From the NCBI GenBank assembly GCA_965644295.1, contig CBFFRP010000132.1, forward strand, positions 218,704 through 282,703: DNA of 64,000 nucleotides, in the 5' to 3' direction. Numbering within the stretch: the stretch's first letter is position 1; the number at the start of each line of letters is the position of its first letter. The stretch is from Paraphysomonas bandaiensis. Lineage: Eukaryota; Protista; Chrysophyceae. Positions 1,171 to 64,000 of this stretch are shown here, one piece after another. The translations under genes were made by a program, and so were the position numbers. The notes under the pieces were generated by a model that saw only the letters and a list, made by a program, of their open reading frames with translations, searched no databases and had not been told where the DNA came from.

Positions 1171-1213
1171 TTGTGAGTGGGATTTTAAGTAATTGGAATG
1201 CAAAGTTTTTAAA

Positions 1214-2605: not shown

Positions 2606-3501
2606 ATATGACTACATGTTATAATGCCAATGCGTCACGTTATATGTTTTTCTGCATGTTGTAGCGCTTGACTAATAAATACACTTGGAATTAACAAATT
2701 TAGTATTCTGAGTTTGTGAAGTCAGAGAAGAAAAAATCAGAGTAGCTTGAATTCGGTGAATATACTGCTATTATGTAGATTACAGAGTTCGTTTTCTTCT
2801 CCTTGTATTGTTTCCTACTAACACACATAAAACAGACCCAAAAATATAAACAGATAAGTTTCCTCTTCTATTCATTTCTATGCAAAAAAGCCCGTACCAA
2901 GCAAAATTCCGCTTTCAAAACGAGATTCGTCACCATATATCTGCTATCTTAACGCGAACTGACTGTAGTGAAAGTTTCAATATGTCCCCTTTGAGGGCTA
3001 CTAGCTACTATTATAATTTTAAATTAGAAAGACTTACAATTAAGATTCATCTTTCATCTTAATACAAGATAGATGATAGTATATGTTATATGTACTAGTT
3101 TGTTCAATGAAATAGATCAAAAACTGAATTAATGATTGTATCTGTTACCTGTTGAGGATTCAGGATCGTCACTGTCAAAAAATTTCAATTTACTGCGCTT
3201 TACTCTCAAGAAGTAGGCCGAATAAGTCTTTCTCTAGTTTTCAACTGTCGGTTACAGACTTCCACGTAAGAAGTTGGTAATATTTTAAATAGATATACAA
3301 GTACTCAGAGGATATAATAATGCTCAACAACTCGAGATACATTTACACCCACTCAATTCGACTCATAATCTAAACATGTTAGACACAAACTACTTTTAAA
3401 AATTATCAAATGATATTGAGAACAAATGTTTTCAATACAGAAGCCGTAATTGGTGAATACATTTTACAATCACAGTTTTGTAGGAAATTAACTTGCTGCT
3501 T

Positions 3502-7015: not shown

Positions 7016-7999
<984 letters not shown>

Positions 8000-9549
8000 C
8001 TACGATATATGGTGTATATATATGGGCCTATACATATACCATGCATGGTATACGCGTATACACTTGTTATACTGTACTGCTGTATATGAACTGCAAGGCT
8101 TCCGCCTGCGGTATACGATGGTCTACGGTGTTATGTGCAGGTGAACAGAGCAGCACGTTCGTAGTACTGTAGAGCACTGCTGTACACAGCAGTGGACATA
8201 TGCAGCATATCCTCACCCACACCACACTCACCAACCTTAACACGATCAGGGGTCATGTTGCTCTGGTATACTGCATTGTGTGACTGTAATCTACGTGATA
8301 TCATCAGTACACTGCATCACACCTGAAGATATATGTAAAGAAGCTCTTGCTCCATCTCATATGACACTAATATGACACAGCTAATAACCCTAGCAAGCCA
8401 TATGAACCCTTATCTATGCCTATGTATTAATATTGAGGTTTGATATCTCTGCTTCACCTCGTATCATTAATGGTCCTCTTGACCATATCTTACATGATGC
8501 ATTATGGTTTAATCTCAAGATGCCCGATGTGATGAAGTTTACAGTTTAGGCCAAACACCTGGTAATAGTTGGATAATGCCTATTGGTTACGAATGTTTTG
8601 AGAATTCATAGATAGTATATGATCTTTCATAATCAATCGTACCAAACGTAATAATAGTACGATTTAAGCTTAGATACCCTTGCCTACAGGTACTTATAAC
8701 TACTACATATGATATGCATTTTAGTTACGGGCTAGATACATCTACAGTAGTCCCTAATAACTTTATGTCGGTAGTAAGATGACACATATTATTGTTGGTA
8801 AATTAGTGCCACGAAAAAGGTATTTGTCGACAAGTATAAATGTTGATACCTGGTAAAAATAATTCAACGATAATGAAATGTTGGGTCATGGACTCACATT
8901 TTCCATTGTAGAATTAAGGCTCAATGAAAGCCATGAAATGTGCAATGACCAGTTTGCAGGATTAGAAATACATGCACTTACTCCTAACGAATTTGTGTCA
9001 TAGGTTCATGTTCCGTGTGTTCCTGGAAGATCTAGTTGTTTTAAAATGTGACAAATGCACTTCAATGTAATTATATATGCTAAGAAAATTGATAGATTCT
9101 CACTAAATATGTAGCTCAACTTAGTTATATGCGAATTAATATAATTATTTATATCACAGCGAAGAATCCCCTTCCTTCCCGCTGTGTGTGTTCCAAATTT
9201 GGGGTGATAGCACAGACTTCATCGTCAACAGTGTTTTATGAAACTTGGAATATCAAAGTTCCATCAGCATTATATCTGCCAATCAAACAACAAGATTACA
9301 AGAATTCTCATTTCATATGAAGTTCAAAAGGATTAATGAAAAGGATCCTCTCTAAAGCCAAATATAATTGGTTGTTTTCTTGTGGGACACTCTGATTCTG
9401 GTATACTAGTCAGTAGATTTCGTTTGTCATTCAGCACTGATAAATTTCATTTACATTTTAATCCCATCATTAAGGGTAATGAGTATAACGATTAGATATA
9501 TACCATATATACCTAAAAATCAACATGTATAGAAATCGGCACATGAAAA

Positions 9550-22800: not shown

Positions 22801-24799
22801 CACATGTGTTCCAACTATATCTCCGACATCTTTTCCGACGGTTTCGCCGACAAGTACTCCTAGTATGTGTCCCACATATACACCGTCGCTGTTACCTACT
22901 GGTGAACCAACTGTAGCCCCCACGGTAGGGCCATCTCATTCTCCCACTTGTGTTCCAACTATATCTCCGACATCATTTCCGACGGTTTCGCCGACAAGTA
23001 CTCCTAGTATGTGTCCCACATATACACCGTCGCTGTTACCTACTGGTGAACCAACTGTAGCCCCCACGGTAGGGCCATCTCATTCTCCCACATGTGTTCC
23101 AACTATATCTCCGACATCATTTCCGACGGTTTCGCCGACAAGTACTCCTAGTATGTGTCCCACATATACACCGTCGCTGTTACCTACAGGTGAACCAACT
23201 GTAGCCCCCACGGTAGGGCCGTCTCATTCTCCCACCTGTGTTCCAACTATATCTCCGACATCATTTCCGACGGTTTCGCCGACAAGTACTCCTAGTATGT
23301 GTCCCACATATACACCGTCGCTGTTACCTACTGGTGAACCAACTGTAGCCCCCACGGTAGGGCCATCTCATTCTCCCACATGTGTTCCAACTATATCTCC
23401 GACATCATTTCCGACGGTTTCGCCGACAAGTACTCCTAGTATGTGTCCCACATATACACCGTCGCTGTTACCTACTGGTGAACCAACTGTAGCCCCCACG
23501 GTAGGACCGTCTCATTCTCCCACCTGTGTTCCAACTATATCTCCGACATCATTTCCGACGGTTTCGCCGACAAGTACTCCTAGTATGTGTCCCACATATA
23601 CACCGTCGCTGTTACCTACTGGTGAACCAACTGTAGCCCCCACGGTAGGGCCATCTCATTCTCCCACTTGTGTTCCAACTATATCTCCGACATCATTTCC
23701 GACGGTTTCGCCGACAAGTACTCCTAGTATGTGTCCCACATATACACCGTCGCTGTTACCTACAGGTGAACCAACTGTAGCCCCCACGGTAGGACCGTCT
23801 CATTCTCCCACATGTGTTCCAACTATATCTCCGACATCATTTCCGACAGTTAACCCAGTTGCTGACCCTACATCTTGTCCTTCGTTTTCTCCAACTATGC
23901 TTTTTGACGTATTGCCTACAATTATTCCAACTGCTGTACCATCTCTATACCCTACAGAATTGGTAACTGTTACTGTAGCAATACCTTGCTCCTTTAATGC
24001 CACCGGCTTGCAGTTTCTTAATAGCTCCTCTGAGTTGGAGATTGCTCTGGAAGATGTTCTTTTGGGGGAAGACGAAGGGTATGTAGTTGTTGATGGCATA
24101 AGCAAGATTGGTGCCGTTAACACGGAGTATCAATCTGTGTTTGTCATAGCTGCTGAAGAGTTGGATGTGTATCTTGTTTCTTACACGGTGTTTGGTGTGT
24201 ATCGACGACACAGTCCGGGAGTGAACAAGGATGTTGTGTTCAGCACGTTGCAGCAAAAGTATTCTGACGCCATTGAGAGCGGTGCTCTAGTTACCAGGGT
24301 GTCTAGTGTTGCTAAAAATACAGTAACGATATCCGGCTACATCAGCAGTATCGACGATGTGAGAGTAACTGCTGCTACGCGAATACCGACGTCATTTCCT
24401 AGCATACAACCAAGCTCTGAGATACTGCATCGGTCGTCCGATAGTCGTACAACAATAGCTGAATCACATTCCACATGGTACATTGTAGCGGCTGTGGTGT
24501 TCGTGTTTTTATTGCTCGCAGTTTTCTTATGTCGGAAGTATGTGTATGCGATGCGTCGGCAAGAAAAAAGTGAATTTTACGGTCTTAATGCCCACACTCT
24601 GGCCACTGAGACAGTTTCTATTGACAGCGAGCGACCAATTTCAAGTATATTCCCTCGAGGTGAGGATACACGAAGGGTAGAAAAGTTTTATAATATGGAG
24701 TCGTCATTAAGGATTGATTTGGGGGAAGAAGATCCTGAGATTGTTAGTGATAAGGTCTCGTCGGCGTTAGTTAGAAATGAAAATATAGAGGCAGTGTAG
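19872..24799 (+). CDS. Type I membrane protein: signal peptide, ~20 plant-type LRRs, PT-rich stalk, TM helix, short cytoplasmic tail (receptor-like, no kinase)
   Basis: Exon 1 MRLYVLCVCMAALLPLSS, intron 19927-19985 in frame with the 1595-aa ORF; LxxLxLxxNxLxGxLP repeats; CSWDGIGC N-cap; TM WYIVAAVVFVFLLLAVFLC. Confidence 0.92.
21779..23850 (+). repeat. Coding minisatellite: 14 full plus one partial 144-bp (48-aa) PT repeat
   Basis: Unit starts at 21779, 21923 ... 23795 (14 x 144 bp); the amino-acid unit is identical in all copies. Confidence 0.97.
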
Positions 24800-36847: not shown

Positions 36848-39800
36848 CTATAATTTTCCTTCTCGTTTAGCTTTTTGATATGCCTCACTTCTTTCTTTTA
36901 TCTCTCTCAATTTATTTTGCCTTACTTCTTCTTCAGTTAGCTGCTCCGCTTCTTCTATTTCGGGTTCCAAAAACTTGTCTTCGAACCAATCCCCTTCAGT
37001 GACGACTTTCTTATGTTCTACTGTAGCGATATAAGTTCCACTACCATGTCGCTTATCATCTAGCCACATTCCGGTATACACTGATCCATCTGCATATGTC
37101 ATAACGCCTGAGCCTGACTTCACTCCTCCTTCAAACGCACCCACATATACCCCTCCATTCATGCATTCCAAAGTACCGTGCCCATCGTGAAAATCCAACT
37201 TCCAAAAACCAGTATATACATCTATACTCCTGTGAGTTTGAACGCCATATCCATGCCGTAGATCATTTTCATATTCACCATCATATGTATCACCTCGTTT
37301 ACTTGTAAACTTACCCTTTCCGTGTCGCATATCATCTTTGTATGACCCCTCATACACATCCCCGCATGCGTGTTTGAATACACCTTTTCCATTCTTCATA
37401 TCATGTTCCCAGTATCCTGTGTATTTTCCGTCTTCAGAAATGTACTGGCCGTTGCCATGCCTCATCCCATTAACCCAGTCACCAGTATATTCTGACCCGT
37501 CTGGATAAACTTGCTCGCCATATCCGTCGCGTAGCCCATACGCAAAATTACCAGTATACTTCCCATTCGGCCCGCTTAATACCCCACTGCCGGAATATTT
37601 CCCATTTACAAATGTACCATCATATTTCGAGCCATCGGAATTCACCTCCACACCTTTTCCATGGGGCTTATCATGTGCCCAATCACCAGAGTATTTCCTC
37701 CCAGGAGAAATAAATACGCCATACCCATCTCTGGAAGCCATATTAAATCTCCCCTCATACGTATCACCGTTTGCATATGTTAGAAAGCCTACACCATGAT
37801 AGTGATCCTCTTTCCACTCTCCACAATATGTTTCACCGTTGCTTAGCTCCAGCACACCCTCTCCTTGACGACAGTCTTTCACATAATCTCCATCATATAC
37901 GGAACCATCATTATATACATATCTCCCCTTGCCATGCTTCGCGTAGTCCAACCATTCACCATCGTATGTATCACCATTGGAGTATTTCATTATCCCACGC
38001 CCACGCGGTTTCCCTTCAAAATACTGACCGTAGAATGTACAATCAGATTGGGTGAACACCCCCCACCCATGTCTTTTGTCATTAAGAAACTGTCCAACGT
38101 AAGTGTCCCCATTTCCATAAGTAATCGTGCCTTTGCCTTGCATTTTATTATTTTCCCAAGTTCCCTCACATACGGTTCCATCTGTATACTTCAACGTCCC
38201 TTTCCCATGAAATTGGTTGTATTTGTAGAACCCCTCGTAACCTGATCCATCCCGTCGTGTAACTTTCCCCCATCCATGCTTCATATCATTGCGCCACTGA
38301 CCGTAGTGAATCTCATCGTTACCTACTGTTAAAACACCTTGACCATGTCTCTTATTCGCTTCGAATTCGCCATCATAGGAGTCACCATTCGCATAGGTGT
38401 ATACTCCCCTACCATGTTTGATATTGTCGGACCACTCACCCTCATAAGTTTCGCCATTCGCCCTGCAGTGGAGAAAAAATAAAGTATTAAAGTGACACAA
38501 GCACTACATGGTACCATATATTCATGTCTACCTACACACACAACTAACCATTTATTGATTCCTTTTCCACACCGAAGTCCCATGCTCCATTCACCGACAT
38601 ATGTTGCCTGTCCGTCATCATAAGTGTATATACCCTCGCCATGCCGTTTATCGTCTTCCCACATACCAACGTATGTTGCACCATTGCTGTAAACGTTCGA
38701 TCCATAGCCATGCTTTCTGAAGCACACCCATTCCCCGTCGTACTTTTCACCAAGTGAGCTGATGTAAACACCTTTACCTTGAAATCGGTCGTTCTCCCAT
38801 GAGCCATCGTATATATCACCATTGGTACTAGTATATTTTCCTTGACCGTGCATTCTTCCTTTCTTAAACTCTCCATCATAAACAGCTCCATCAGCGAATG
38901 TATACGAACCCTCGCCACTCCATTTGTCAAATTTCCAGTCACCTTCGTATTTTGTTCCTACGTCAGATACATATACTCCATATCCATGGCGCTTTCCTTT
39001 CTTATATTGGCCTTCGTACGTCGCACCAGATGTGTATAGGAAGTATCCATCACCTTGTTTAAACCCATCGACATACTCTCCACGATATCCTGTTCCTTTC
39101 GGAGTAATAAAGTACCCCTTTCCTGCTTTTTTTCCTTCTTTAAATGCACCAGTAAACTGGCCATCTATCATTGGAAATTCAGCAGTCAAAACTCCTCTTC
39201 CATATATACTGTCATCAACAAACCCCTCGTGGTAAACGACATCATTTCCAGCTCTCAAATATCCTCGTCCAGCAACTTCATCATTTTCAAAGAGCAAATC
39301 AAAGCTATTTCCTTCGGGAGATGTATACCGGCCTCTTCCATGCTTCATATTGCTACGAAACTCACCGTCGTATACAGACCCATCTGGCGCTCGGTCTACT
39401 CCATGTCCATGGCGGTTGTCGTCCTCCCATTCACCCTCATACTCTCCCCCGCCGACATATTGATATGTACCTCTTCCATGACGCAAATCACATGAAAACT
39501 CACCCTCATATACTGCTCCACTTTCATATGTGTACCTTCCTATTCCATGTTTTTCGTTGTCTAACCACTCACCGACATACACATCACCATTAGAGTATGC
39601 CATAATACCGCGACCATGTTGAATACCCATCACAAACTCTCCTTCATATTTTACCCCTCCCTCCGATTCACCATACAATAAGATTCCAATGCCATTCCAG
39701 CAGTCGTTCTTCCACTCGCCATCATAACGTTGCCCTGATGGATACGTCTGCACACCCCTGCCATGTCGTAGGCCCATCACATAATCGCCTTCATATATCG

Positions 39801-41277
39801 TGCCATCTGAATTCTTATAGAAACATTTCCCATGTTTCTTACCATCTACATACTCCCCTATAAATGTTGATCCGTCATTGTACACAAACTCCATCCACCT
39901 ATTCTTCAGTCCACGTTGCCAGAGCCCCTTATATGTAACTTTATCAGGAATGCTGATTAACACACCTGTTCCATGCATTTTACCCTCCTCCCAATACCCA
40001 TCATATACACTGCCGTCCACATGTGTATATATACCTTTTCCGTGCCATTTCCCATTCTTATAGCTCCCTTCGTAAATAGACTTATCAGCAAACGTATGGA
40101 TACCCCATCCGTCTTGAGTATCGTGCAACCATTCTCCTCCATACACTTCAACCTGCCCGTATGTCATTATCCCTCGTCCCGATCGCTGGTCGCAAAAATA
40201 CTCGCCATCGTAAACAGCTCCATTAGTATGGGTATACACACCCTTTCCATGCTTCATATTATCCTTCCATTCCCCGTCATACATATCACCATTTGACCTG
40301 CACATAAATAGGTAGAAGAGATTACGAAAAGCAATGCATGCACATATATCGATAACTTATATTCATGTTGATTCATCATCTATGTGCACATTTAAAACAT
40401 CTGAGATCGAGCTAAAAGAAAATATGCAAGCATAGATACTCTCACACTCACCAGGTCGCCACACCATGTCCACATTTTTTACCATTCTTCCAATAACCAT
40501 GATATATATCACCCTTGGACGTAGTTAAAATACCCTTCCCATGTCGCTTCCCACTCGCGTAGTACCCTGTGTAGTGTGAACCATCAGAGCCTTTGTACGC
40601 CCCCCTGCCATGTTTCTTTCCATGTTTGTATTGGCCCTCGTATAAGGAGCCGTCAGCTGACAGAAACACGCCTTGGCCGCACTTCACATCATTTTCATAC
40701 TCCCCTGAATATAAGGCCCCACTTGGGTAACGGTACTCGCCAACCCCGTGGCGGTTGTCGCCTCTCCATTCTCCATTGTAGACAGCTCCATCCTAATGAT
40801 AACGAATTACTGAAATTCCAAATACTCTCAATATAAAATCGTTTTGTCAAATGAATTCTACTATCTTGCAGAATAATATTGTTACATGACACCACAAATG
40901 ATAGACATAGAGTAAATACAACATACCGCATACAGATAGATTCCTTTCCCACTCTTAACACCATTTTCCCAGTCTCCATCATACGCTGATCCATCAGGGT
41001 AGGAATATAGGCCTCTTCCATGCATGGTTCCATTATTATATTCCCCAATATACATTTCATTCTCATTTTCTGACTTTATACCGACAGGATATTGAGTATT
41101 GTCTGCATCAGTACACCAGCCAGAGTTTGAGTACTTTACACCCCTCTCAATAGAAAATTCTCCTCTGTCATCACATATGCTGCCGACAGCAATATCACCA
41201 TTGGCTGTGATGTACACTCTCTCACTCATAGTGTGCGCTGATTCAACCATAATTGTGCTTCTGTCGGTTACAGACAT
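36848..41277 (-). CDS. Giant MORN-repeat protein (roughly 50 repeats), ~4 exons
   Basis: Continuous YxGxWxxxxxHGxG repeats across ORFs 40882-41277, 40448-40687, 38329-40305 and 36848-38500, with GT-AG junctions; short coiled-coil C-terminus. Confidence 0.92.
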
Positions 41278-51609: not shown

Positions 51610-54258
51610 ATGGACCTGGTCACTCCTAATCTAGTGATATCCAGCTACTTTAATGTGAGACTGTCTGTATATGCGTGTGTAGAGATCCATATATGGGTGT
51701 CTCATTGTCTGTTAAGAGCATAACTACATCCCCCTCATATCATTTTATCACAGGAGCGTTATGATGATATTCAAAGACTCCGAAGTAAACTGCGAAGCAT
51801 GTCTAATAAACGCAAGCTTGATGATGGCCCGCCTGAGAGGCGCTGCAGTCGACGTCGAACAGGAAGTTATCGCAAGTTTCGCATTAATAGGAATGCATTG
51901 AGATTACTGGAGAGACACAACAAGGCCAATCATAGGGATAGGGATGATAAGTGGTGTCGAGAGTATCGAAGAAGAAGATCTCAACTGGTTGCTCGTCAAG
52001 GGACCAGCTCTGGTCATGCTGTGGTTGATGCTCTCTGGCTGCCAACACATTTATGGCATACGAAAAGATTTCAAATGAAAAAGCAATGGAATTTCATATT
52101 ACCTCAAAAATCAGCTGCTAGAGGACAGAAGTTCGTGTGGGAAAAGATGCGAAATGGGAGTGTGGTGCACGATGCATCGTACATCAGACCAATTCAAGTG
52201 GAAGGGAACACTGAAGTAATTATTGGCGTGCTTCAGGCACTCATGGTACGCACACATCGAATATATGAACGCAGCTTATAGTATTTTTTGTAAGGATCCT
52301 TTAAAAAAAGATTGGCAGAAAGAAATAAATATCGACGGGATCTGTGAGCAGAAGGTAGGGCCTATTGTGTGCTAGCGTATGTTGTGTTCATTACTCCACG
52401 CTTCAGGTCTGCTTTTATAAGGCCAATAGTTTTCCGTCGCAATGTATCGGTCCTGTTATATTGCACTTTCATCCATCTGTACTTGATAGAGACAGTAATC
52501 ATTCCAAGGTAATACTTTTTTACCTAAGACTTTTTTTTGACTCAGTGACAGCTATGGGTGTGGTGTCATCCGTCCATTTATGACGACGTGTTCGGTGAGT
52601 TGGTGTCAGGAGTTGACTCCTTGGGAGCTGGTGAGGAGCCTTCTGCTACTGTCGAATCACTTTCTAGTCAACTTTGTCGATTTTCGATAATTGGATCGCT
52701 ATCTGCGACAGTGCTGCAGCGTGTATTGGTACCAGCCACGCTGCCCTGCAATGCACAGGGAACACCAATGGGTGAAAATGGTGACTTCTTCTTGGAGCTT
52801 CTGAATAGCCCCGCAGTGGGGGCTGTGTGGAAACATGGCCATGTGTTGGGATTAGACGTGATTGACTGTAGAGAGCTTAAATACTCTACTTCAGGTAAGA
52901 CAGATGTCCGGGAGGAAAACCCCTATAAGAGATGGGACAAAACCAGCGATATATCGGATCCTCGTCACAGTAGCGCCCTACCAGGACAATCTCAATGGCT
53001 GAAGTGGCCAGAGACTGCGCCCATGTCGGGTTTATATTCCGAGTTGTGTCGCAAGCAGTGTACTGAAGAGATGATTTCAACTAGTGCACTAAACGCACAT
53101 AGACATAAACAAAGAGAGAGTGCGTGGACACTTCCCACCGGTGTACGAGGGGACGCCAGTGGCACATGGACTGCAACTGGTACACCCAAATCACAAGAAA
53201 GTTGTAAAACTTCTGTTCAAACACGTAATGTGTTCCCTATACTTTTGGTTCGTAATCACGGGTCTTCTTTATGCTCTGAGCCTCAGGGTAGTGTGCTCCC
53301 ACGAAAATCAACGTCTTACGGTCACAAATGGCCACACAAACGTATGAAATCTGCTGCTGGTGTCCTGCCGAGTTCGTACTGTGGGTGGGATATCATTGCT
53401 CCGGCAGCGTGGGCTTGTGTGTTGTGGCAAGCGTTAACATACGCCGGTGCTTGCGCAGTTGGTCAAGACGAAATGAACCTGATCTACACCGCTTCGAAAA
53501 TCCCTGCATTCCCCAGAGATTACCCTGATACCAAAGCAGGGTTGCAGTATTGGAAAGAGCTGGAAAAATCTCTTAACAATCTTAGAAGCAAACGACCAAG
53601 TAGGAAAAAGTTGATTAAAAAGACAGGAGAGGACGCTATATTCCGTGATTTTTTTAGTCTTGTATCTCACAGAGATGGCGAGTACCAACTTGTTCAAATT
53701 CGTAACCCAGAGTATGTTGCCCCATTTCTTCCACCCGTAGTGTTGTCACGGACTAGTATGCGATTCGTACAGCCCGATCGCCTGGTGGAAATGAATAGTC
53801 CGGATGAAGGTACTAGAGACAGTTGTACGGCGACACTTTCTCTTCCTTTTCCAACTGTAATCAGAGTATTCATCACCTGCACAGGACGGGGTGTACCTCA
53901 AAGTGGAGCAGCTTTGTATCAGCCTCTGCTATCTGATTATGAAGCATGGGTGAAGCACAAGAATAATAAAGACACCAATACGACTGCACATGGCCGCAGA
54001 CTTGCAGATTGGTGGGGCGATAGAGCCCAGGCATGTGATGATGACAGAAATGTTATTGGCTATGTGACGTCGGCGTGTGGTTTGACACATATCAGTGATA
54101 CTAGAATAGCGATCGGATTTTGTGAAGCTTTAGCATTGAAACGTCTACTTTATGCGTCGTGCGAAAGAGTAGTCGGCAGTGGCAGTTTGTTGATACTATA
54201 TCGCAATAGTTTGTCTGAGTGGTTCAGACCTGCCCTACTAGAAATTCACGTGTTTTAA
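51610..54258 (+). CDS. POP1: RNase P/MRP protein subunit POP1, multi-exon
   Basis: WLPTHLWHTKRFQM, VHDASY, WVWCHPS, GWDIIAPAAWACVLWQAL, FPRDYPDT, IGYVTS. Confidence 0.92.
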
Positions 54259-54832: not shown

Positions 54833-55248
54833 TATTGAATGTCTGATTATTAAAAAGCGCAAGCTTGTGCGTTGTCGCGACCAACCTAACAACTCGCGCG
54901 ACACTCTAAGACTCTAAGCATATATTATGACTCTCAACTCTGGTTACTATTGCATGCACGAGACCGACAAGTGCTCAACTATACAACACGATTAGTTAGC
55001 TACGTGGGCATACGACGAGTTGTGTGTTTTAGCCGGATCATACGCTTCTGCCCAATCTACTTGTCTTAACACACAAACAACTTGCGGTCGGTGTCTTCGG
55101 CATAATAATCTATATTATGTCTCCTGTATAATATGCGGCAGATCATTAGGACCCTCTTCAAGGTGGTATTTTCACAGCAGCAGGTAGTCTGGAGGGGAGA
55201 GTAGAGTAGCTCCAGCGCCTGTCCTCCCACGGTCACAAGCGGTCTGAG

Positions 55249-56730
55249 TTGGGGTTTCCCATTCAACCCCCTACCCCCCAAGACATCGCTACCTTCAGGG
55301 CAGCCAAGGATGCACGAACGTGTTCAGACTTACCCGCTCCCACAGCGAGTAGGGTAGTCCGAGCGTTCGACCTAGGCAGACCTGGGTACGAAGTCCGACA
55401 GGGCATGGGAGCGAATGTTACCGCTGACTCATGTATGTACTCCTCCCCTCTATGCTTTGACCTCCATGTAGAAACGGGCACATCAGTCGATGACAAAGGC
55501 CTCCTTCGGACCGAACGCCGACATGTCCAGATATCACTTTTCCGAACGCCACGAGAACTCTTCGTGGGTCGCACCAAGGATGAGCCCTCGCTGATACCAG
55601 TGGCGGCTATATATGGGCTACATGCAGACTCAGCGCACACCAGACCTGCACATGCCTTTAGGTTACGAAACACGCTGGATATGCTTCTCCGAACGGGAGG
55701 TTTCCCCACGCCACCTCTATACGAAGTATTCTGGACTCTAACACACTATAGAGGCAAGACTCGAGCCACTGATAAAACATATAGGTTCTATCAGATTCTA
55801 TTACTCCACGATCCCATTCACGATCAGGATCTAAGAGCTAAATTCTATAAAGCACTCTTCAATAATGAAATAGGAGGACATGTCGAAATCAACCTCGGCT
55901 CACTCTGTTGTAGAATGGTCAGCACTGAAACACCCACGCAAAAGCAGTCCAACTGGACACCGTCTCAAGAACTCTTCCGCATCGCTGTCTGCTCTGAAAC
56001 ACTCCTATCTCCCATCCAAGTCTGGCAAGCCTGTGAGGCTATAGGTATCCCATCCACGGACATAGAGGACATCATTTGGACCGCCCGCAACCCACTCACA
56101 AGCGGGCGCAAAGAAAAAGAACGCTTAGTTGAACAAACCTACATTTACCTGGACGACAGGAATACCAAGATCAAACTCTGTTGGGAAATCTCACGCACAG
56201 GTATCGTGCCTTTACTGCGCAAAGCTCTGGGTGACGAAACTCTAAGGCTCCTCTATCACACCATAGCAGTCCCCCCTGGCCTCCCTACTCAGCGGTTTCT
56301 ATACGGCCTCCATAAGGCCACAGACACAGCAACAAACGCCCCTCCCATAATACCGCCTCCAACGTCCCTTCAACCCTTCGGTCCAACTGTTGCTCCACAA
56401 ATGCAGACCGATACACCGCGATCGTACACTCCCAAACGACAGCGACAGATGGACACATCCCCATCAACAGAGCCAGCACCAGCTCCCACCTGCCCAGAGC
56501 TCTGCGAAATAGCTCTACACATCGCTTCAGATCTTGTACCTCTGTCAAAAATCCATGCCATCCTCGCGCAAATGGAAAACGCGGTTGCAGCTCTCTATGA
56601 GATCGATGCTGGGGCGACTCTCACGGTACTTGATTACTATAAAAACAAGGTAGATCACAGTATCCCAGAAAGGTCCTCAGAAGAACACTCTCGGGTGGAC
56701 TCGGACATCTTCGGCTCCGACTCCAACTGA
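55249..56730 (+). CDS. Retrotransposon ORF1-position protein, no recognised domain (first in-frame ATG at 55405)
   Basis: 493-codon intronless ORF directly upstream of ORF2, with the same composition. Confidence 0.7.
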   Translation: MGFPIQPPTPQDIATFRAAKDARTCSDLPAPTASRVVRAFDLGRPGYEVRQGMGANVTADSCMYSSPLCFDLHVETGTSVDDKGLLRTERRHVQISLFRTPRELFVGRTKDEPSLIPVAAIYGLHADSAHTRPAHAFRLRNTLDMLLRTGGFPTPPLYEVFWTLTHYRGKTRATDKTYRFYQILLLHDPIHDQDLRAKFYKALFNNEIGGHVEINLGSLCCRMVSTETPTQKQSNWTPSQELFRIAVCSETLLSPIQVWQACEAIGIPSTDIEDIIWTARNPLTSGRKEKERLVEQTYIYLDDRNTKIKLCWEISRTGIVPLLRKALGDETLRLLYHTIAVPPGLPTQRFLYGLHKATDTATNAPPIIPPPTSLQPFGPTVAPQMQTDTPRSYTPKRQRQMDTSPSTEPAPAPTCPELCEIALHIASDLVPLSKIHAILAQMENAVAALYEIDAGATLTVLDYYKNKVDHSIPERSSEEHSRVDSDIFGSDSN

Positions 56731-56877
56731 CTCCTACTGGACTGGGACACAACGAACATCAAACGTACACTCATAGAAGTGTCCGCAGCTGCTCACACGT
56801 GGTTATCCCCCAGTCCACACTTACATATCCATAGTTGGCCCTCACCTGACACAACGACCTTCGCCTGTAGCACCCAC

Positions 56878-57441
56878 ATGCGTCCACCACGTAAACCGCC
56901 AGACAAACAGTCGAGATCCACCAGTGTACATCCCACGAAAAGGCACCAAGGACCGCACTTTTCCTGTGATAATAGTGGTGATGGACCACGAAAACGGCCG
57001 GCCTCGACACAACGTAAGCGAAACAACCTCCGGCGGCTCAGTCGCAAACGAACTCTGCAACAATTTCGTGAAGGAACAATCCAGTCCCTCCCTCCACACA
57101 TACAACGTCAACAGACACGAAACAAGCTCCGCATCCGTGCCCACAACAAGCAAGCATGGCGAGAGCATTTACAACACCTGGCACAACAGTGTGTAGACAC
57201 ACACAACATCGTGACCACTCCTATACCTGACACAGCACCCACAGCTGTTACAGCACCCCCCGTCCAGAAGACTCCACACATACTATTTGCCTCCCTCCGC
57301 CCACAGTGGAGGACGAACAAGAGAGAACAATCACTGACACAAGTGTACTGCCTCAACTATTTGTGCCGCACCCTCTGCCAGCTGCCTTCACGGACCCCGG
57401 ACTGCAGAATTGGTCCTTCTACTCGCCCAGCGGTCTGTTAG
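56878..57441 (+). CDS. Basic ORF (MRPPRKPPD...), probable N-terminus of ORF2 separated by a -1 frameshift
   Basis: Overlaps the long frame over 57231-57441 and shares the QGxxFSxDNSGDGP motif with it. Confidence 0.55.
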   Translation: MRPPRKPPDKQSRSTSVHPTKRHQGPHFSCDNSGDGPRKRPASTQRKRNNLRRLSRKRTLQQFREGTIQSLPPHIQRQQTRNKLRIRAHNKQAWREHLQHLAQQCVDTHNIVTTPIPDTAPTAVTAPPVQKTPHILFASLRPQWRTNKREQSLTQVYCLNYLCRTLCQLPSRTPDCRIGPSTRPAVC

Positions 57442-60400
57442 CCATTGCCATACACGAAGAGGTGGTTCACAGTGTCATGTCCATGCTACAATCGAGGCAC
57501 GCTTTAGAACGCATAGAACAGCACCTCAGATGTTCGCTTGAGGAGGGGAAAATGCTGGTTGCACGTCACTACACACACACAGAATACAACAACACACCAA
57601 TGGAGGGCTTCTGCGGACTAGCTGCTATTGCCGCAATATACCACAAACAACCGGAGGAGGACCACTACCCGTATTTAAATCCCGATGATCCAGCCTCGAA
57701 AGCAAAACTGCTCCAAGTCATTCAGACAAGCAGGACGGTACTTAGTACCTACACGCTCGCTGAAGCCAAGATGCTTAACTTTGCATGCATCCGGAAGAAG
57801 CTCCGACAGCAGCTAACAACGTACAACAAAGCACTACGCCGCAAACGACCAACTGCTGTCGGAATACCCCCAGAGCAATGGGGCTACACAGACATCATAG
57901 CCCTCCTGGCAGAAACCCTGAGTATACGAATTCGTATCTGGCAAGATTCACCAGTGGACCTTGGCCACAACTGGGCGTACTGGTCTACCCACCATTCCTC
58001 CTTCCTTCCACAAACTCAATTCCTTCCATCTTATGATGTGTTTTGCTCCAACGACCACTTCTTCCTGGACACCAAATACCCGGTGGAGTTGGAACTACAC
58101 GCGCTACTCGAGAGAATTCCTGACCTCGTCATCATGCGTCTCCAAAATGTGTTGCAATATCATTCCAAGGGAATGCAAGGAGTACATCGTGCCAGGTCCA
58201 TCAACCATCCCTCCCACGCCCTTCAGGGGAAGGAATTCTCTTCCGATAACAGCGGTGACGGACCCAGCAAATCCACCCACACATTACCCTTACCCACTAA
58301 GGATGCCACCACACCGTATGCAACTCTATTTGACTATTTCCCAGTCAAACGGAGGCCACCTACCACCAACCCTACTCAACTGAACACCATGGGAACTCCA
58401 GCATTAGCCCCAGACGGCCCATCCTCACACTCCACTACCACTCCTGACATCAGGCCGGATGCACTGCCCAAGGACATTGCCACACACCCCCGACACTACA
58501 CAGAGGGCTGGGGTCACACGCCCTTTCACTCCGATCTGCTGAACAACTGGGTTAGATATGATGAAACCCAAACCATTGCTGCCTCCCCACAGGGAAACCT
58601 TTTAAAAGAAATATATGCACACATGCTATCCCCTGCCTGTACAGACATATGGGAAGGATTCATAGCCAAGGCTTCCAGGACGGACAACTATGATCTCATG
58701 ATATCATTCACGCTACCAGAGCACAAATTGGATACCACGCACAGCGCCCTACTAGTTGCCCAGCATCTCGCGAATGGCAACAAACCCTGGGCAGACTCCA
58801 CTCATGTTGTATCTAGGCATGTGCGGACCCTTTGCCTGACAAAGGGTATTCCCTCAACAGCCACTGTTAGTCTCCGTAAGACACTCATGCAATATGAATC
58901 CTCGACTCCACACACAGGACTACATCTAGACACGGAGGATTTCCAACTGCTACTCGATCTTCTCTCCATACCATACAGACTATGGGACGCTGTTCAACCG
59001 CACCTGGCGCCTGGTTGGGCACAGCTGTCACCATTCTCCAGACAGGCACTAACAGTGCACGCTTCTACCAACACTGTGGTAACCCATGACATCATACGCA
59101 GCCAGCATGGGTTTCACATACTCAATGCAACAAATATCCCCACCTGCATCATGCACGCTCTAACACGGACTCAGGAGCGGCTATCCTGTTTTCTACAACA
59201 CCAGACCTCCAGACAGAGCACCAATATCCTCTGGACTTCTGAGCCGTCAACTGTACCACCTATGCTACATGAGCACAGAGAGCAACAGGAACAGAGGGAA
59301 GTAATTGCAGTCTCCTTGTCACCGAGAGCTCGACGTCAACTACGACAGATGAACCCCACGGACCGTCGACAACTCAGGCTCCATATGTGCGACATGAGCA
59401 GAGTCTACCGCCTCACCCTCAGACCCTCAGCCCTTCGCACACAACAACATATCCCTAGTGATGGGTACTGCGCATACAGCACACTCTATCATCTGCACAT
59501 TCTTGCTTCAAGCAGGCGACACACTCGCTCCTGTCTGAAATTAGACCTCAAACAACGCAAGGACCGTCACACGCTAGCATCTTTCATAAATACATTAGGC
59601 ACCCAAGCGTTCGACATAATGCAACGGGAGTGCATGGCCCATCACACACTTCAGCCACTACGACATAAGTTAGATCACGCACAGGCCGCACTTTTAATAC
59701 CTACCAAAACAACATACACTACGGAAGACGACATAACTCACTGGCTCTCAGTGCGAGAAGTCCACCTTTTAGCCTCTACTATCAACCCCTGCACGACGTG
59801 GGCGCAAAATGGTAATTACCTCAGCATTGTAGGCATCCCTACTGACAAAGTAGCTTATAACATCGCATGGAAGGTGGACGAACTTAGGGACGCTATTCGT
59901 GATAACTACTACCATGTCATACTACAAGATGCTCACTACTTCCTCTTAGACCCTGCCGGTCTTTCTACTGCCCTAGACAACGCCCTACTATCTCTTGAAA
60001 ACACCTTGGCCACCAGTATACTCTCAACGGCTGACCCCATCGCTCCACCTACACTCCCCGCGGACTCAATCACGAACAACAATAGGACATCAAAGATGAC
60101 CAGCACCAGAACAACCTCGTCAAGCAGCACCAAGTTAGCACGAACAAATCGACAGATTCTGCAGGCTTCAACCCCTGGAGCACTACCATCGCACAAGAAG
60201 ATGCAGTTGAAACACGCCCAAACTGCGTTGACAAGTCGATGCCAGCCAACCCGGAAAGCCAAAAAGGTCGTAAATTACGATGAAAGTGACCAACCAACGA
60301 ACCTTCACAACTCACACCCAACCACGACCACACGAACGATCAGACCAACTCCAGCACTAGATACCACCGGCTGGGACAGGGACTGGTCAAGAAAGTTCTA

Positions 60401-63400
60401 CATTGCGTACGCCGATAACACTGCCAAAGGACTATCCCTTTATGCGAAGAACACATTCCCAGCAGACGTCATCATTGCTGAGTACAAAGGCAAACGCTAT
60501 CCACTAACAAAGATGAGTCAGTCTACAAGGCGTTCTGATTACATAGTTCAAGACAGTACTGGTACCTTCGCAATAGATGGCTTTGACCAAGTCCGACAAT
60601 GTGTAACATGCGAAGCTGGGTATATTAATGACCCCCTAGCCACAAACATGGCTAATGTCAAGTTTGTCACGAAAAATAAACGCCTCTATGTCCGTACAAT
60701 ACGTTCCATTGCTAAGGATGAAGAACTTCTCATCAACTACGGACATCATTATTGGTGTGATCAACGCTGGCCACTTGAGATATTAATCCAAGCCAGGGCT
60801 GCGTACGACAGCGACATAGGCGGTGCCAATATAGCAGTATGGGACAGACTCCTTGCAGACAAGAGTGGAACTCCTACAGAGACCTCCAGCAGCATCCCCA
60901 AGGATCCCTCGGGAGCAGCCATGGGACTCCGACTCTCCACATGGAACACAAATGGCAATCCGGCATCACACACAGGTAAAGCCCAAGCTATCATCCGACA
61001 CTTTAAGCGGCAAAAATTGGACGTGCTCCTATTACAGGATGTCCGTCTAACAGAAACTCAGGCCAACTTCTTCACGCGTATCATCGAAGATGCACTCCAG
61101 GGAACAAGAATATGCCTCTTCCTCAGCAAGCAGCCAAAACTGACTTCAAGAGACCCACTAATGGGGGGTACAGTAGTCATAATCAGCGAATACTGGAAGC
61201 GCCGTCTCGCCTTCACAAAGGCTGACTTTACGGGACTTGGTTTAGTGAGCCGACTAGAGTTCAAAACGTCGGTGGCGCACACCCTAGTACTAATAAGCGT
61301 CTATCTACCCCCGAAGCCATCCACGCCAGGCACTTGCACATTATGGAGCAAATTGACCAAGCTAGGGAGAGCGTCCCGTGGTATCTGTACTGCTGACCCC
61401 TACAAGCTCCTATGCAACATCCTTACGAAATGGGTCACTAAAGCCAGAGCCAAGGACCATACTGTCATTGTCGCCGGCGACTTCAATGGCTCCATGGAGA
61501 CAAATCCTAAAGGCAGAGACATACGACCACTTGCCGACAAACTCCAACTGGCTGCACCACTCCATGAGCTTCTCCTACCCAGGAAAACATATCATACCTT
61601 CCACAGATTAGACAAAGGAATATCGCGGATCGATCATATTCTACACACGCCGTTACCTCCGAACATGTCTGTTACGGACACTGGCTGCCTTGACTCCCCC
61701 TCATTACTCGCAGCAGCCTTCGATCATCGACCGGTCTGGGTCGGTTTCACCGTACCAGTCAATCTTGACCCTCGACCACCTGAGTCGCACCTCCGAATCC
61801 CCCCCCGTCTCAATGTAAACCCGAAGGACTCCAAGGAAGTACAGGCATACACCGCAAGACTCCTCCAACTTCATGCACAACTACCACATTTAGACAACGG
61901 ATCGACTACCATACTCCCTCCTGAGGTGGCAGCCAACAGACTAGCGGCCATCCATCACATAACCCTCCAGGCTTCGCTTGAGGCGAAGCGTCCTGCATGT
62001 ACACATAGCACACGCCTACACGAACGTTGTCAGCGCACACGCTCAAAGTTCAAGAATGGCTTTTCCCCGGAAATGAGAGTAATACAGGAAGGAATGCTCA
62101 TGGTTTTGCGGATTATCCAAAAGATGTTCAATTCTGCTGGATACAAACGGCATGGATGGCGCGGCCCCCCGGCAACCACCCCCACCCACGAAATCATCAC
62201 TGCATGGTTCGCCCGATGGGACTCCTATCTCAGGAGTTCTCAGGGTCACATCAAAGGCATATCGGACATCAACTTCTGGTGCAGCCACCGCAACGCGGAC
62301 CCACGAGTAATCCTGGGTTGGAACGAAAAGCAAGCCACCAAGAAAAACCTTCTCCGAATTGCCTTGCGACTGAGAGGACTTCTTCATGGAAGAGCCAGGA
62401 CAGAAATGCGGACTAGACTCACGGCTCGCACCAAGCAGATGGAGGCACTGCTACAGCAGAAAAGACTTCAAGCAATTCTTCAGAAAATTGGTCTCAAGGT
62501 CAAAACACCACTCCGACTTACCACGGTGAAAACAACGGACGGACACATCCTCACAACGCCGCAAGACATTCATGAAGGCATTAATGCGCACTTCCGTGAA
62601 CATCATGCCAAACCTCCTGGACTTGACCCTGTAGCACAACAGCTCCAGGATGACCCTACATGGTGGAAATCACTTCTTGATCCGGGCTCAGCGACATGCC
62701 AGGAACCACTCCACCCCCGCTCGAAAATTCCTCTTCCCCTGCAACTGGGGTTACGACGGGCCCTTTGTACCAAGACCACTCCGGCCATGGCAGCCACACT
62801 CAAATCTACTCTTGCAAAAGACATCACCCAGGATGAATTCTACTGCACACTTCACTCTCTCTCCTTCAACCGCGCGCCTGGACCCTCAATGGTCTCCTCC
62901 AACATGGTCAAATCCTGGCCACCGGTAGTTCAGCGAGAGGCTTACATCCTCACCAGATCTCTCTGGAAACATAAACATGTGCCCATTTGGTGGAGAGACA
63001 GGGTAATGTCTCCCATTCTCAAGAAACCAGGAGAATCCTCCCTCACTAATCTCCGACCGATTGGTCTGCTTGAAGTCAGTAGGAAAATATTAACAAGGAT
63101 AATCACTCATAGAATTCTTACCGTATGGGAGGAACAGAAAGTTTTGCATCCGTCCCAGCATGGTTATCGCTGGAGGAACGGGACGGACACAGCGATACTA
63201 CGGGTACTCGCGGCTGCAGAAGAAGCAAGACGAAAAGGCGACCAGCATATATGTACACTCTGGGACTTCAAGAAGGCCTTCGACTCAATTGCGCCTAACC
63301 TCATGCGTCTCGCGTGGGCACGACTGGGCGTTCCGGACGATGTAGTTGACTGGTTTGGCAACTTAGATGCCGGCGGTCTAACATTTCCCTGGACACCATT

Positions 63401-64000
63401 CATGGCAAACAACATAGAGCCACGTTCTCTCCTTGACCTCCTGTCCGCAGACGGCCACTTCATTGCACTATTCAGTCTGGGTTTCGAAGCCGAAAGGGGT
63501 ATCACCCAAGGGGGCACAGAATCCACATGCGCCTGGGTGGCACTCTACGACATCCTTCTCACGTGGCTGGACATTGAACTGTCAACAACGAGTCCAACGT
63601 TACCAACTATTCAACTCACGACTCCGACTACAGGCGAAATAAAGATCTCCTTCGCGGATGATCTTAACACAATAGCTAAATCCATACACGCTGCCCAACT
63701 CATTGCCCAACAAATATCTGCGTTCTGCGTACTTTCGGGAATGGAACTCTCTATCCCCAAAGTAGTTTGCACAGTGTTTCCGATCCTACAGGATTCCAAC
63801 AAGTCCTCCGACCCCATTGGCTACATCATTCTCTACGACTGGTCATGGCGCCCACACCCAGTCCCTATCCAAACATCACTAGAGTCGATACATTACCTCG
63901 GAGCAGACCTTCCTCTCACAATCACAGACAAGGCCTCCCATGACTGGTGTCTAAAATACCTGAAAGTCGTGACCACACACCTAGGGATCAAACAGGCCTC
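57231..64000 (+). CDS. Retrotransposon ORF2 polyprotein (>2250 codons, no stop in window): OTU-like x3, SET, AP endonuclease, reverse transcriptase
   Basis: Frame opens after TGA 57228-30, first ATG 57477. OTU-like: PMEGFCGLAAI..QWG..NDHFF and PSDGYCAYSTL..HWL..DAHYF. SET ~60390-60755: KGLSLYAK, EYKG, GYINDP, RSIAKDEELLINYGHHYW. APE ~60927-61750: STWNTNG, LLLQD, AGDFNG, SRIDHIL, FDHRPV. RT ~62870-63905: APGPS, LRPIGLL, QHGY, WDFKKAFDSI, GITQGG, FADD (63651), YLG. Confidence 0.93.

Follow-up and report, generated by a model that had tools for sequence, protein, structure and literature searches.

We conclude, with a probability of about 0.78, that the retroelement at the end of the window (the whole 64,000-nucleotide stretch of Paraphysomonas bandaiensis DNA that was analysed) belongs to a young, autonomous, APE-type non-LTR retrotransposon (LINE) family of a marine protist, in which the accessory modules would be functional parts, SET methylating lysine and the OTU-like modules acting as clan-CA cysteine proteases. 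As a whole, this reading offers the best explanation of the data. An APE-RT retroelement whose ORF2 carries SET and OTU-like modules ahead of the endonuclease, as the earlier note had proposed, is supported, with the OTU-like modules themselves assigned as probable. The full-length element spans 12.3 kb (12,340 bp) and consists of ORF1 (851 aa), a single in-frame TGA and an ORF2 of ~3160 codons. Along ORF2 follow an S-D-x-x-G-D-G-P motif, OTU-like module 1, the motif again, module 2, OTU-like module 3, a Ser/Thr-rich linker, SET, the AP endonuclease, the reverse transcriptase (RT), RNase H and a Cys-rich, basic tail (Table 1).

Table 1. Positions in the window of the LINE copy and its parts
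Feature	Position	Strand	Details
LINE copy	55245..64000	+	Element positions 1129-9884 of the 12,340-bp full-length element
ORF1, C-terminal ~493 codons	55249..56727	+	From the ORF list; full-length ORF1 is element 59-2611, 851 aa
Single in-frame TGA between ORF1 and ORF2	56728..56730	+	From the sequence; context TGA CTC
ORF2 N-terminal extension	56731..57255	+	In another frame in the window copy (1-bp deletion); C255 ORF2 open from element position 2615
Frame noticed first	57231..64000	+	2256 codons; main part of ORF2
1-bp (C) deletion site	57256	+	Copy alignment against C255 and two independent samples
OTU-like module 1 (probable)	57528..58100	+	Cys motif MEGFCG 57600-57617; His motif SNDHFFLD 58047-58070
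Second motif copy, SSDNSGDGP	58239..58265	+	Between modules 1 and 2; motif also in P0002, P0003, P0005, P0007 and P0020
Module 2 (perhaps a degenerate copy of an OTU-like module, lacking the catalytic Cys)	58491..59150	+	WEGFIA 58650-58667; LSIPYRLW 58962-58985; QHGFHIL 59103-59123
OTU-like module 3 (probable)	59406..59975	+	Cys motif SDGYCA 59457-59474; His motif QDAHYFLL 59925-59948
Ser/Thr-rich basic linker	60033..60365	+	aa 935-1045; 30% S+T over 111 residues
SET lysine-methyltransferase domain, PR/SET-like	60429..60755	+	YINDP 60621-60635; EELLINYG 60720-60743
AP endonuclease (EEP)	60939..61736	+	Pfam Exo_endo_phos 1.4e-9; N, D, GDxN and DH motifs
Reverse transcriptase	63021..64000 (to window end)	+	Pfam RVT_1 7.7e-15; FADD 63651-63662

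The start of the window copy at 55245 was placed by blastn against the full-length copies C255 and C152 (99.8%). The copy is 5'-truncated, lacking the first 1128 bases of the element, and on the 3' side it is cut off by the end of the contig, which is also the end of the window. The observation that started this work, an uninterrupted frame of more than 2250 codons missing from the ORF track, holds on both counts: the 2256 codons of 57231-64000 contain no stop, and the sole cause of their absence from the ORF list is that the frame runs off the end of the window and contig. The copy had also been described as intact and young; it is young, being 99.7-99.9% identical to other copies, and it is not intact, given the 5' truncation, the cut at the contig end and a 1-bp deletion. 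An extra C after 57255 is present in C255, X2 (depth 12/12) and X4 and absent from the window copy, so that the deletion hides the true start of ORF2 there. In C255 and two independent samples, ORF2 opens at 56731, right behind the ORF1 stop, and in C255 the two ORFs share the same frame. Across 55245-58016, the X2 metagenome contig differs from the window by 3 mismatches and 1 gap, none of them listed at the TGA between ORF1 and ORF2. Reassignment of TGA as a common sense codon in this element was rejected, the long ORF2 frames inspected being free of any in-frame stop. ORF1 gave no known domain in Pfam, even at E<=10. All proteins searched here and below were natural, unaltered frames.

Evidence for the mode of spread came from the other copies, of which at least 40 were scored in the genome at 97-100% identity. 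Target-site duplications (TSDs) of 10-12 bp flank four of the five copies inspected, three of the five are truncated at differing 5' points, and all five share one 3' end, the element terminating in a fixed non-A sequence; the earlier note had called for a search for just such a 3' end and TSD. No LTR, TIR or integrase was found in the inspected copies. Because it has 10-12 bp TSDs and 5' truncations and lacks LTRs and an integrase, the element spreads by target-primed reverse transcription (TPRT). The genome also holds more than 100 short, internally deleted derivatives. Metagenome contigs match the element at 99.9%, and polyA metatranscriptome contigs, a type of data that can contain DNA, cover parts of 57970-60521.

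The position of the window copy at a contig end, in an assembly that repeats interrupt, could suggest that the architecture is an artefact, produced by chimeric assembly or by insertion of a LINE into OTU and SET genes of the host. The same continuous frame, however, recurs in many copies on different contigs, with TSDs of their own, and in independent metagenome contigs, and the domain order is kept in five distant relatives. An assembly chimera was rejected on these grounds, and the chance that the architecture is artefactual in either way is negligible. Copies with the same architecture number more than 40 in the genome, with further examples among metagenome contigs and relatives that are 26-35% identical, so that a chimera confined to this locus, which the earlier note had named as a possible refutation, was not what we found.

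The catalytic core of the LINE was readily identified. Exo_endo_phos matched aa 1237-1474 at 38.5 bits (cut-off 24.5) and RVT_1 matched aa 1931-2224 at 55.6 bits (cut-off 29.6), both following SET in the order first proposed. The catalytic-type N, D, GDxN and DH columns of the endonuclease are invariant across relatives, and the best solved relatives of the RT are human LINE-1 ORF2p (E 2e-7). Beyond the contig end, ORF2 continues in other copies for ~740 codons, comprising RNase H and a zinc-finger tail. Pfam finds nothing in this post-RT region, and RNase H was assigned by fold: its model (pLDDT 77) matched foamy-virus, human, E. coli and MLV RNase H in Foldseek with a probability of 1.00 and E-values down to 1.6e-4, confirming the fold, and the columns D28, E93, D116, H163 and D185, a D-E-D-(H)-D set, are invariant. 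An APE-RT-RNase H order fits several LINE clades. The element resembles human LINE-1 ORF2p (PDB 8C8J, 8UW3, 8SXT, 9HDO) in the order of APE and RT, in the hallmarks of TPRT and in offering the best solved RT match. In contrast, L1 ORF2p is ~1275 aa long, begins with APE, lacks RNase H as well as SET and protease modules, and belongs to an element with a poly(A) end.

Judged by its sequence matches, the SET domain is genuine. Pfam SET (PF00856) matched aa 1067-1171 at 35.1 bits in the whole ORF and at 39.7 bits when the domain was searched by itself (cut-off 22.4), and PRDM2_PR matched the same region at 21-26 bits. The family SET profile matched more than 100 solved SET chains, including EZH2 (7.9e-9), PRDM12, LegAS4, SET1/MLL, PRDM9 and SETD7, and the relatives also pass the Pfam threshold, P0007 being borderline. 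In the C-terminal block, EELLINYG..YW in the window copy, the Y, G, Y and W are invariant among five sequences at 26-34% identity. The N-H-(S/C) motif of the cofactor site was not found in the five aligned sequences, four of which read I/L-N-D and the fifth, P0007, I-D-E. With NH reading ND, catalytic competence would not be assured. Activity does not depend on a canonical NH motif in PR/SET enzymes such as PRDM9, and thus the ND reading is compatible with SET activity.

This precedent, the invariant C-terminal EEL...YG..YW block with its catalytic-region Tyr and the lack of an evident common target sequence among the five inspected TSDs weigh against SET being a tether or reader that would steer the endonuclease to particular chromatin, by analogy with chromovirus chromodomains, and write no mark. 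We consider such a role unlikely, although it would fit the ND reading of the family (I-D-E in P0007), the position of SET adjoining the endonuclease on its upstream side, and a broad survey in which transposable elements were found to have captured reader domains more often than other chromatin domains (10.1101/2021.11.30.470311). The preferred reading is that SET would act as a lysine methyltransferase.

The N-terminal modules were harder to place. PF02338, the Pfam OTU model proposed as a check, gave no match at E<=10 with the whole ORF, the split modules or the modules of eight relatives. Searches of PDB sequences by phmmer and profile, using the N-terminal region and the module alignments A1 and A8, returned nothing relevant, a viral OTU chain appearing at E 0.75 only. 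The module 3 model had no significant Foldseek match in PDB, BFVD or ESM Atlas, a search for homologous proteins with the module profile recovered a near-identical fragment only, and an exhaustive representative search with the 990-aa N-terminal region recovered five fragments only. Support for an OTU assignment came from other quarters. Modules 1 and 3 are mutually homologous, both carry the Cys/His pair, and in a language-model search each landed independently on PF02338 clusters, the Atlas features of module 1 pointing to them at 0.90. Module 1 also aligns to aa 45-226 of the relative P0002 (E 9e-7), and the relative L036 matched the module profile at 96.4% (E 1.3e-9). Nearly all of the structural matches that span the domain, weak as they are, are OTU or related DUB folds. 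Wherever the N-terminal part of a module is available, in the window and in relatives, it shows a G-[YF/L]-C Cys loop, and the His is the sole invariant polar residue of the modules; the predicted model puts the Cys, residue 48, where helix 48-61 begins, and the His, residue 203, on strand 203-207.

Modules 1 and 3 are thus probable OTU-type cysteine proteases. A fold that is neither OTU nor papain-like, with the N-terminal modules being helical/beta domains under fast evolution (binding RNA or protein, for instance) and their Cys and His structural, is doubtful: two modules fell independently on PF02338 clusters, the domain-spanning structural matches are nearly all OTU or related DUB, and the kept Cys loop lies at a helix start and the invariant His on a strand, an arrangement shared with clan CA proteases. 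That module 2 is a degenerate OTU is weakly suggested by its local alignment to module 1 (z = 3.6, a score matched by 5 of 500 shuffles), which sets EGF-I opposite EGF-C; against this, hhalign gave only 2-7% with OTU-like profiles. Module 2 is kept at 54% in fragment P0018. Of the order first read from the sequence (OTU-like, degenerate OTU-like, OTU-like, S/T linker, SET, APE, RT), SET, APE and RT are therefore borne out by Pfam and the linker by its 30% Ser/Thr content, whereas the OTU-like modules fail in Pfam and are probable on weaker evidence, with module 2 weak.

We evaluated the conservation of this design in relatives and between subfamilies. The SET-APE-RT order is kept in five metagenomic relatives at 26-35% identity (P0002, P0003, P0005, P0007 and L036), and four of the five keep an OTU-like module. 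The exception, P0005, has no recognisable OTU-like module though it keeps the GDGP motif, and the N-termini of P0005 and P0009 gave nothing against the OTU-like profile. The dN/dS between subfamilies, which the earlier note had asked for by domain, is 0.22-0.25 overall (about 0.24), falling to 0.15-0.20 in module 3 and 0 in the RT; module 2 stands at 0.17-0.34, and the linker is the least constrained part of ORF2 at 0.5-0.75. In subfamily B, the more abundant, most of ORF1 has disappeared, as has the catalytic half of module 1 with its Cys, leaving a single open frame of ~3000 codons, as inferred from P0017, the loose ends of reads and match tables; one copy is open over all 2333 codons available, with 3021 reported open. 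Given that subfamily B thrives in this state, module 1 is either dispensable for spread or supplied in trans.

A short peptide motif accompanies the modules; the element has it as S-D-N-S-G-D-G-P, and most relatives as S-[DN]-x-x-G-D-G-P. Its first copy, SCDNSGDGP (56962-56988), lies in the ORF2 N-terminal extension together with a basic stretch. The 2A-like ribosome-skipping signature D-x-E-x-N-P-G-P was not found, N-P-G-P being absent from the motifs of the element and its relatives. By analogy with tymoviruses and arteriviruses, the OTU-like modules might act chiefly in cis as polyprotein proteases that cut at S-D-x-x-G-D-G-P and free the N-terminal pieces from SET-APE-RT-RNH, rather than as host-directed deubiquitinases. 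Two copies of the motif in ORF2, each ahead of a module, its retention by relatives that are 26-35% identical, where it invariably precedes the first module, and the plausible need of a polyprotein of more than 3000 residues for processing all speak for this. However, a Pro behind the scissile bond is unusual for OTU-like viral proteases, P0005 keeps the motif with no recognisable protease module, and the motif could instead be a ribosome-skipping-like or other signal. We regard a chiefly cis-acting role as possible, though a minority reading. Viral OTU-like proteases often do both, processing the polyprotein and deubiquitinating.

Only fragments of this OTU/SET/LINE design have been reported before. 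No description of OTU-like modules, SET and APE-RT in one LINE family was found in the literature searched, nor one of a LINE with a SET domain in main texts. The novelty first claimed for an APE-RT element with several OTU modules and SET is thus partial: the combination is undescribed in the literature searched, and an OTU-bearing ORF2p, a 'SET RVT_1' gene model and Helentrons with OTU or SET are precedents for its parts.

Among LINEs, an ORF2p of Symbiodinium necroappetens has an N-terminal OTU deubiquitinase domain and Dualen/RandI-type ORF2p of Haematococcus has N-terminal Josephin DUBs (preprint PMC13405545). As is probable for our element, a clan-CA DUB-type domain stands at the N-terminus of an APE-type ORF2p behind a short conserved peptide, 2A-like there and S-D-x-x-GDGP here. 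Those elements differ, as far as published descriptions can be compared, in having one OTU domain, no mention of SET, a second, C-terminal RT and an NPGP peptide (PMC13405545). The Symbiodinium microadriaticum model Smic2990, 'SET RVT_1 DnaJ' with a PRDM-like SET and classed as LINE (Supplementary Table 6, 10.1101/2021.11.30.470311), likewise places a PR/SET-type domain N-terminal to a LINE RT in one predicted marine-protist protein, with partial expression support. It is, in contrast, a multi-exon gene model with DnaJ and no endonuclease or OTU listed, described in a single table row and absent from the text, by which description alone it is compared here (10.1101/2021.11.30.470311).

Further parallels lie outside LINEs. 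Helentrons and proto-Helentrons are rolling-circle DNA transposons with an AP endonuclease, alongside which OTU-like cysteine protease genes and, in one Phytophthora proto-Helentron, a SET-domain gene occur; unlike our element they encode Rep/helicase and no RT, and their OTU and SET are separate, unfused ORFs that were not reported together (PMC4067079). Ginger1 DNA transposons similarly fuse a DUB/ULP-type cysteine protease (C-terminal OTU or Ulp1) to a transposition enzyme, but that enzyme is a DDE transposase and its OTU is recognised by pfam02338, which the modules here are not (PMC2836005). Capture of DNMT by dinoflagellate and charophyte retrotransposons (PMC5890265) and of MBD by arthropod Copia (PMC6673714) again yields retroelements encoding a module that modifies or reads chromatin or DNA, with different domains (cytosine methyltransferase, MBD) and different element classes.

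These data allow us to hypothesise how the modules serve the element, of which they would be functional parts rather than passengers. Lying directly ahead of the endonuclease, SET may methylate a lysine in a protein of chromatin, with a histone tail as the likeliest substrate, or in a protein of the element or the host that is present at the integration complex. As clan-CA cysteine proteases, the OTU-like modules may remove ubiquitin-type modifiers or cut the polyprotein at the GDGP motifs. A bolder extension, which we think improbable in its entirety, is a widespread protist LINE family with its own epigenetic and ubiquitin toolkit. Working in cis next to the endonuclease, SET would place a lysine-methyl mark either on a factor of host defence or on the nucleosomes where a copy has just inserted. 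The OTU modules would take off ubiquitin-type marks, or else save the giant nascent polyprotein from quality control that depends on ubiquitin. In this way the element would set the chromatin state of its new copies.

In the usual picture, host chromatin silencing has transposable elements as its targets. That a LINE should keep SET and probable DUB-type proteases under purifying selection, in elements only 26-35% identical, suggests that some retroelements actively modify proteins where they integrate or along the pathway of their own expression. The few kinds of epigenetic module known to have been captured by retroelements (DNMT, MBD, chromo, PHD) are also joined by a lysine methyltransferase, here fused to the TPRT enzyme. 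The system is tractable, since the separate domains can be assayed in vitro, and its natural "deletion mutants", subfamily B and the mini-elements, reveal which parts are dispensable. The conserved GDGP motif, in turn, may represent a new processing or skipping signal.

The single reading frame at 57231-64000, claimed in the earlier note to run uninterrupted, shows no stop over 2256 codons on translation. It does not appear in the ORF list because it overruns the window, the end of which coincides with the end of contig C132 (assembly: 62.6 Mb, 669 contigs). Of the domain order proposed for it (three OTU-like regions, here modules 1 to 3, then an S/T linker, SET, APE and RT), Pfam recovers SET, APE and RT in sequence, with a PRDM2_PR match near threshold at the SET domain, and the stretch from module 3 to SET is indeed 30% Ser/Thr; the OTU assignments are unmatched by Pfam. 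The original observation is thus real and its core is confirmed.

Features of the window, with Pfam bit scores and dN/dS (Nei-Gojobori, window against five copies of subfamily B, all sharing one A-B split and so not independent)
Feature	Window position	Residues of frame	Pfam score (cut-off)	dN/dS	Remark
LRR/PT-repeat host gene	20012-24799 (+)				long uninterrupted frame
MORN-repeat host genes	36848-40305 (-)				long uninterrupted frames
POP1 host gene	52558-54258 (+)				long uninterrupted frame
S-[SC]-D-N-S-G-D-G-P, first copy	56962-56988				in shifted frame
Module 1	57528-58100
S-[SC]-D-N-S-G-D-G-P, second copy	58239-58265
Module 2	58491-59150			0.17-0.34
Module 3	59406-59975			0.15-0.20
S/T linker				0.53-0.75
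SET		1067-1171	35.1; 39.7 scanned alone (22.4)	0.34-0.70	only 5-9 changes
APE (Exo_endo_phos)		1237-1474	38.5 (24.5)	0.27-0.32
RT (RVT_1)		1931-2224	55.6 (29.6)	0
Overall				0.22-0.25	dS about 0.04

The coding layout was taken from natural copies only. In the genomic copy C255, ORF1 comprises 851 aa without any Pfam match and is followed by a single in-frame stop, which in the window is TGA CTC (56728-56730); past it, as read in C255, the frame is open into the 57231-64000 region. One C at window position 57256 is missing from the window copy and from C152. Given that this base is carried by contigs from two independent sequencing runs (X2, a marine metagenome, at 99.9% identity over 55245-58016, and X4, another organism-labelled run), the window copy has a 1-bp deletion, and position 57231 is simply the first codon past a stop in the shifted frame. 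The copy C433 contains a natural open frame of 2818 codons to the ORF2 stop, in which Pfam gives the same SET, EEP and RVT_1. Within the 769 residues after the RT are a CxxC...CxxC block and motifs of RNase H type. For this region neither Pfam nor a sequence search of the PDB returned anything; its D, E, D, H and D columns are invariant in an alignment of nine relatives, and its AlphaFold model (pLDDT 77) resembles the RNase H of foamy virus, human, E. coli and MLV (Foldseek probability 1.00). The frame in C433 and the evidence after the RT therefore give the order of ORF2 as GDGP motif, module 1, GDGP motif, module 2, module 3, S/T linker, SET, APE, RT, RNase H and a Cys/basic tail.

ORF1 and ORF2 share a frame across the single TGA, and the distant relatives L034 and L035 have TGA CGG (1441-1443) and TGA TGG (1244-1246), respectively; conservation between these two contigs starts at the TGA. 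Stop-codon read-through at the ORF1 TGA is possible. In L036, a metagenomic relative, the two ORFs lie in different frames.

We evaluated the nature of the modules by sequence, profile and structure. No OTU match was obtained from Pfam for the window modules, even at E<=10 with each scanned singly, or for any relative's module; comparison with the PDB by sequence or profile gave no match, and Foldseek against PDB, BFVD and Atlas gave nothing significant. Separate language-model feature searches with modules 1 and 3 both landed on PF02338 clusters, at 0.91 (29/30 matches) and 0.90, scores that count as leads. Profiles of modules 1 and 3 that draw on three to five elements could be aligned across 193 columns with 87% probability (E 4e-6), with Cys loop over Cys loop and His motif over His motif. 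A Leu, a Trp and the His are invariant across module sequences that are only 10-20% identical, and a G-[YF]-C loop is present in every module that has its N-terminal part. The model of module 3 has a mean pLDDT of 62 and reaches 75-92 across most of residues 51-150. It puts the Cys (residue 48) where helix 48-61 begins and the His (residue 203) in strand 203-207; this modelled layout is the clan-CA arrangement. We consider modules 1 and 3 to be probable OTU-like cysteine proteases (clan CA, DUB-type; probability roughly 0.8) that fall outside the family as Pfam defines it.

Module 2, described in the earlier note as degenerate, gave only a short in-register match to the module profiles around LSIxxRxW (2-7%). 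Its local alignment with module 1 (z = 3.6) was matched by 5 of 500 shuffles, and in semi-global alignment the EGF-C of module 1 faces EGF-I in module 2. The region is conserved, at 54%, in the fragment P0018, and its dN/dS of 0.17-0.34 marks it as constrained. Judged by these alignments, module 2 is plausibly a degenerate OTU duplicate that would lack the Cys.

The SET domain is 26-34% identical to its counterparts in four relatives when aligned, and in the EEL...YG..YW block Tyr, Gly, Tyr and Trp are among the invariant positions. The family profile matched more than 100 solved SET chains, including EZH2 (7.9e-9), PRDM12, Legionella LegAS4, SET1/MLL, PRDM2/9 and SETD7. The cofactor-site NH motif is ND in four of the five SET sequences and I-D-E in the relative P0007. 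Given that PR/SET enzymes likewise deviate at this motif, the SET domain may still be active; functions of both the SET domain and the protease-like modules are ones that we infer.

A length-bounded search with the part from APE to the C-terminus returned proteins from metagenomes, 2472-2831 aa long and 29-35% identical, that carry precomputed RVT_1, EEP and SET annotations. Our own scans placed SET, then EEP, then RVT_1 in P0002, P0003 and P0005, and SET and RVT_1 in P0007. P0002 and P0003 lie on contigs of ~10 kb, each contig being in essence a whole element; window modules 1 and 3 align with aa 45-226 (E 9e-7) and aa 428-585 (E 6e-5) of P0002. L036, from a metagenome scan, has an ORF1 of 931 aa and an ORF2 of 2782 aa with SET, EEP and RVT_1, and the module profile recognises its N-terminal module at 96.4% (E 1.3e-9). 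The number of protease-like modules varies among relatives from none recognisable to three: P0005 keeps SET with no recognisable OTU-like module, and relatives further away, at about 25% identity, lack both SET and module as far as tested. From this domain content SET is therefore the more stable accessory.

Variants of the GDGP motif, mostly S-[DN]-x-x-G-D-G-P, occur in the N-termini of P0002, P0003 and P0007, at aa 521-540 of P0005 and in the fragment P0020. Wherever kept in these relatives, at 26-35% identity, the motif lies upstream of the first protease-like module. It resembles 2A peptides in length and in its final G-P but lacks their N-P-G-P signature. By its sequence, the motif is a candidate cleavage site or skipping-type signal, though it may also serve some other role.

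The final 4 kb of the window has at least 40 genomic matches at 91-100% identity, mostly 97-100%. Element boundaries were obtained by comparison with five copies fetched with their flanks; at full length, as in contigs C255 and C152, the element spans 12,340 bp. The five copies have a common 3' end without poly(A), three are 5'-truncated at differing points, and four have target-site duplications of 10-12 bp. These 5' truncations, common 3' end and target-site duplications are footprints of target-primed reverse transcription. The window copy, 99.8% identical to full-length copies, starts at 55245, element position 1129. By this comparison it is not intact, as the first 1128 bases are absent and it has the deletion at 57256. 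Assembly error, rather than mutation, may account for several of the single-base indels between copies. Many element copies also lie at contig ends (starts of C654, C269, C405, C248, C590 and C113; end of C132), and the repeat family is therefore a main cause of breaks in the assembly.

Copies of the window's type (subfamily A), window included, are 0.1-0.3% apart, and those of subfamily B differ from the window by about 1.6-1.8%. B copies (for example those on contigs C440, C20, C231 and C434: L007, L008, L011 and L013) match the window only from 57970 on, at about 98% identity; all that lies upstream is replaced by a leader of ~580 bases related to the beginning of ORF1. At 57970 read depth increases about tenfold, which suggests that B is more abundant than A by about that factor. 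Loose ends in a metagenome, an organism-labelled run and a polyA metatranscriptome have one common upstream sequence. P0017 spans the junction: it begins with a part 65% identical to ORF1 aa 79-195, followed by a short stretch like ORF2 aa 42-61, ORF2 from aa 415, the GDGP motif and, at its end, the final ~30 ORF2 residues. Its first 193 residues have at least 189 genomic matches, comprising B copies (a single open frame of 3021 codons is reported for one, and its inspected 7 kb has no stop), over 100 short derivatives whose open frames span about 400-460 codons, and A copies at 53-54% identity inside the 851-codon ORF1. By the junction and these matches, subfamily B keeps little of ORF1 and is without the catalytic (Cys) half of module 1.

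The short derivatives, most of which keep their open frame, combine the leader with the terminal part of module 1, including the GDGP motif, and with the final ~30 ORF2 codons. They have the highest read depth (58031-58428), with loose ends at 58273 and 58841. These internally deleted forms look like non-autonomous riders of the family. A further copy, L020 (C624:15253-20849), is B-like in its 5' part and far more diverged in the APE-RT linker and RT (dS 0.12-0.17, dN/dS 0.6-0.75, two stops); it represents either a recombinant or an older lineage in decay.

The stretch was found in runs labelled marine metagenome and in runs labelled with three organisms. Contigs from a polyA metatranscriptome, a type of library that can contain DNA, match parts of 57970-60521 with 95-99% identity; one contig falls on the A-specific 5' part. 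Among the neighbouring host genes are a homologue of the RNase P/MRP subunit POP1, 1 kb upstream of the LINE copy, and two adjacent genes for MORN-repeat proteins, which have 12-13 repeats each. Another, in a strongly C-skewed stretch, encodes an LRR protein that has a long tail of PT repeats. At 1-1170 lies a (TATG)n microsatellite, about 1.17 kb long and almost perfect.

A survey of chromatin genes (10.1101/2021.11.30.470311) counts SET methyltransferases among the domains that occur in fusions with transposable elements, and Supplementary Table 6 there classes as LINE a gene model from Symbiodinium microadriaticum, "SET RVT_1 DnaJ", whose SET is PRDM-like. OTU-like protease genes occur in Helentrons and a SET gene in a proto-Helentron (PMC4067079), and OTU occurs in Ginger1 transposases (PMC2836005). 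Our full-text search turned up no LINE described as having both SET and OTU modules, and a family with one to three OTU-like modules, SET and APE-RT-RNase H is not described in the literature searched. Each accessory has precedent in mobile elements, with trace precedent in dinoflagellate LINE-like proteins. The element is an ordinary LINE by its mode of movement and an unusual one by its cargo.
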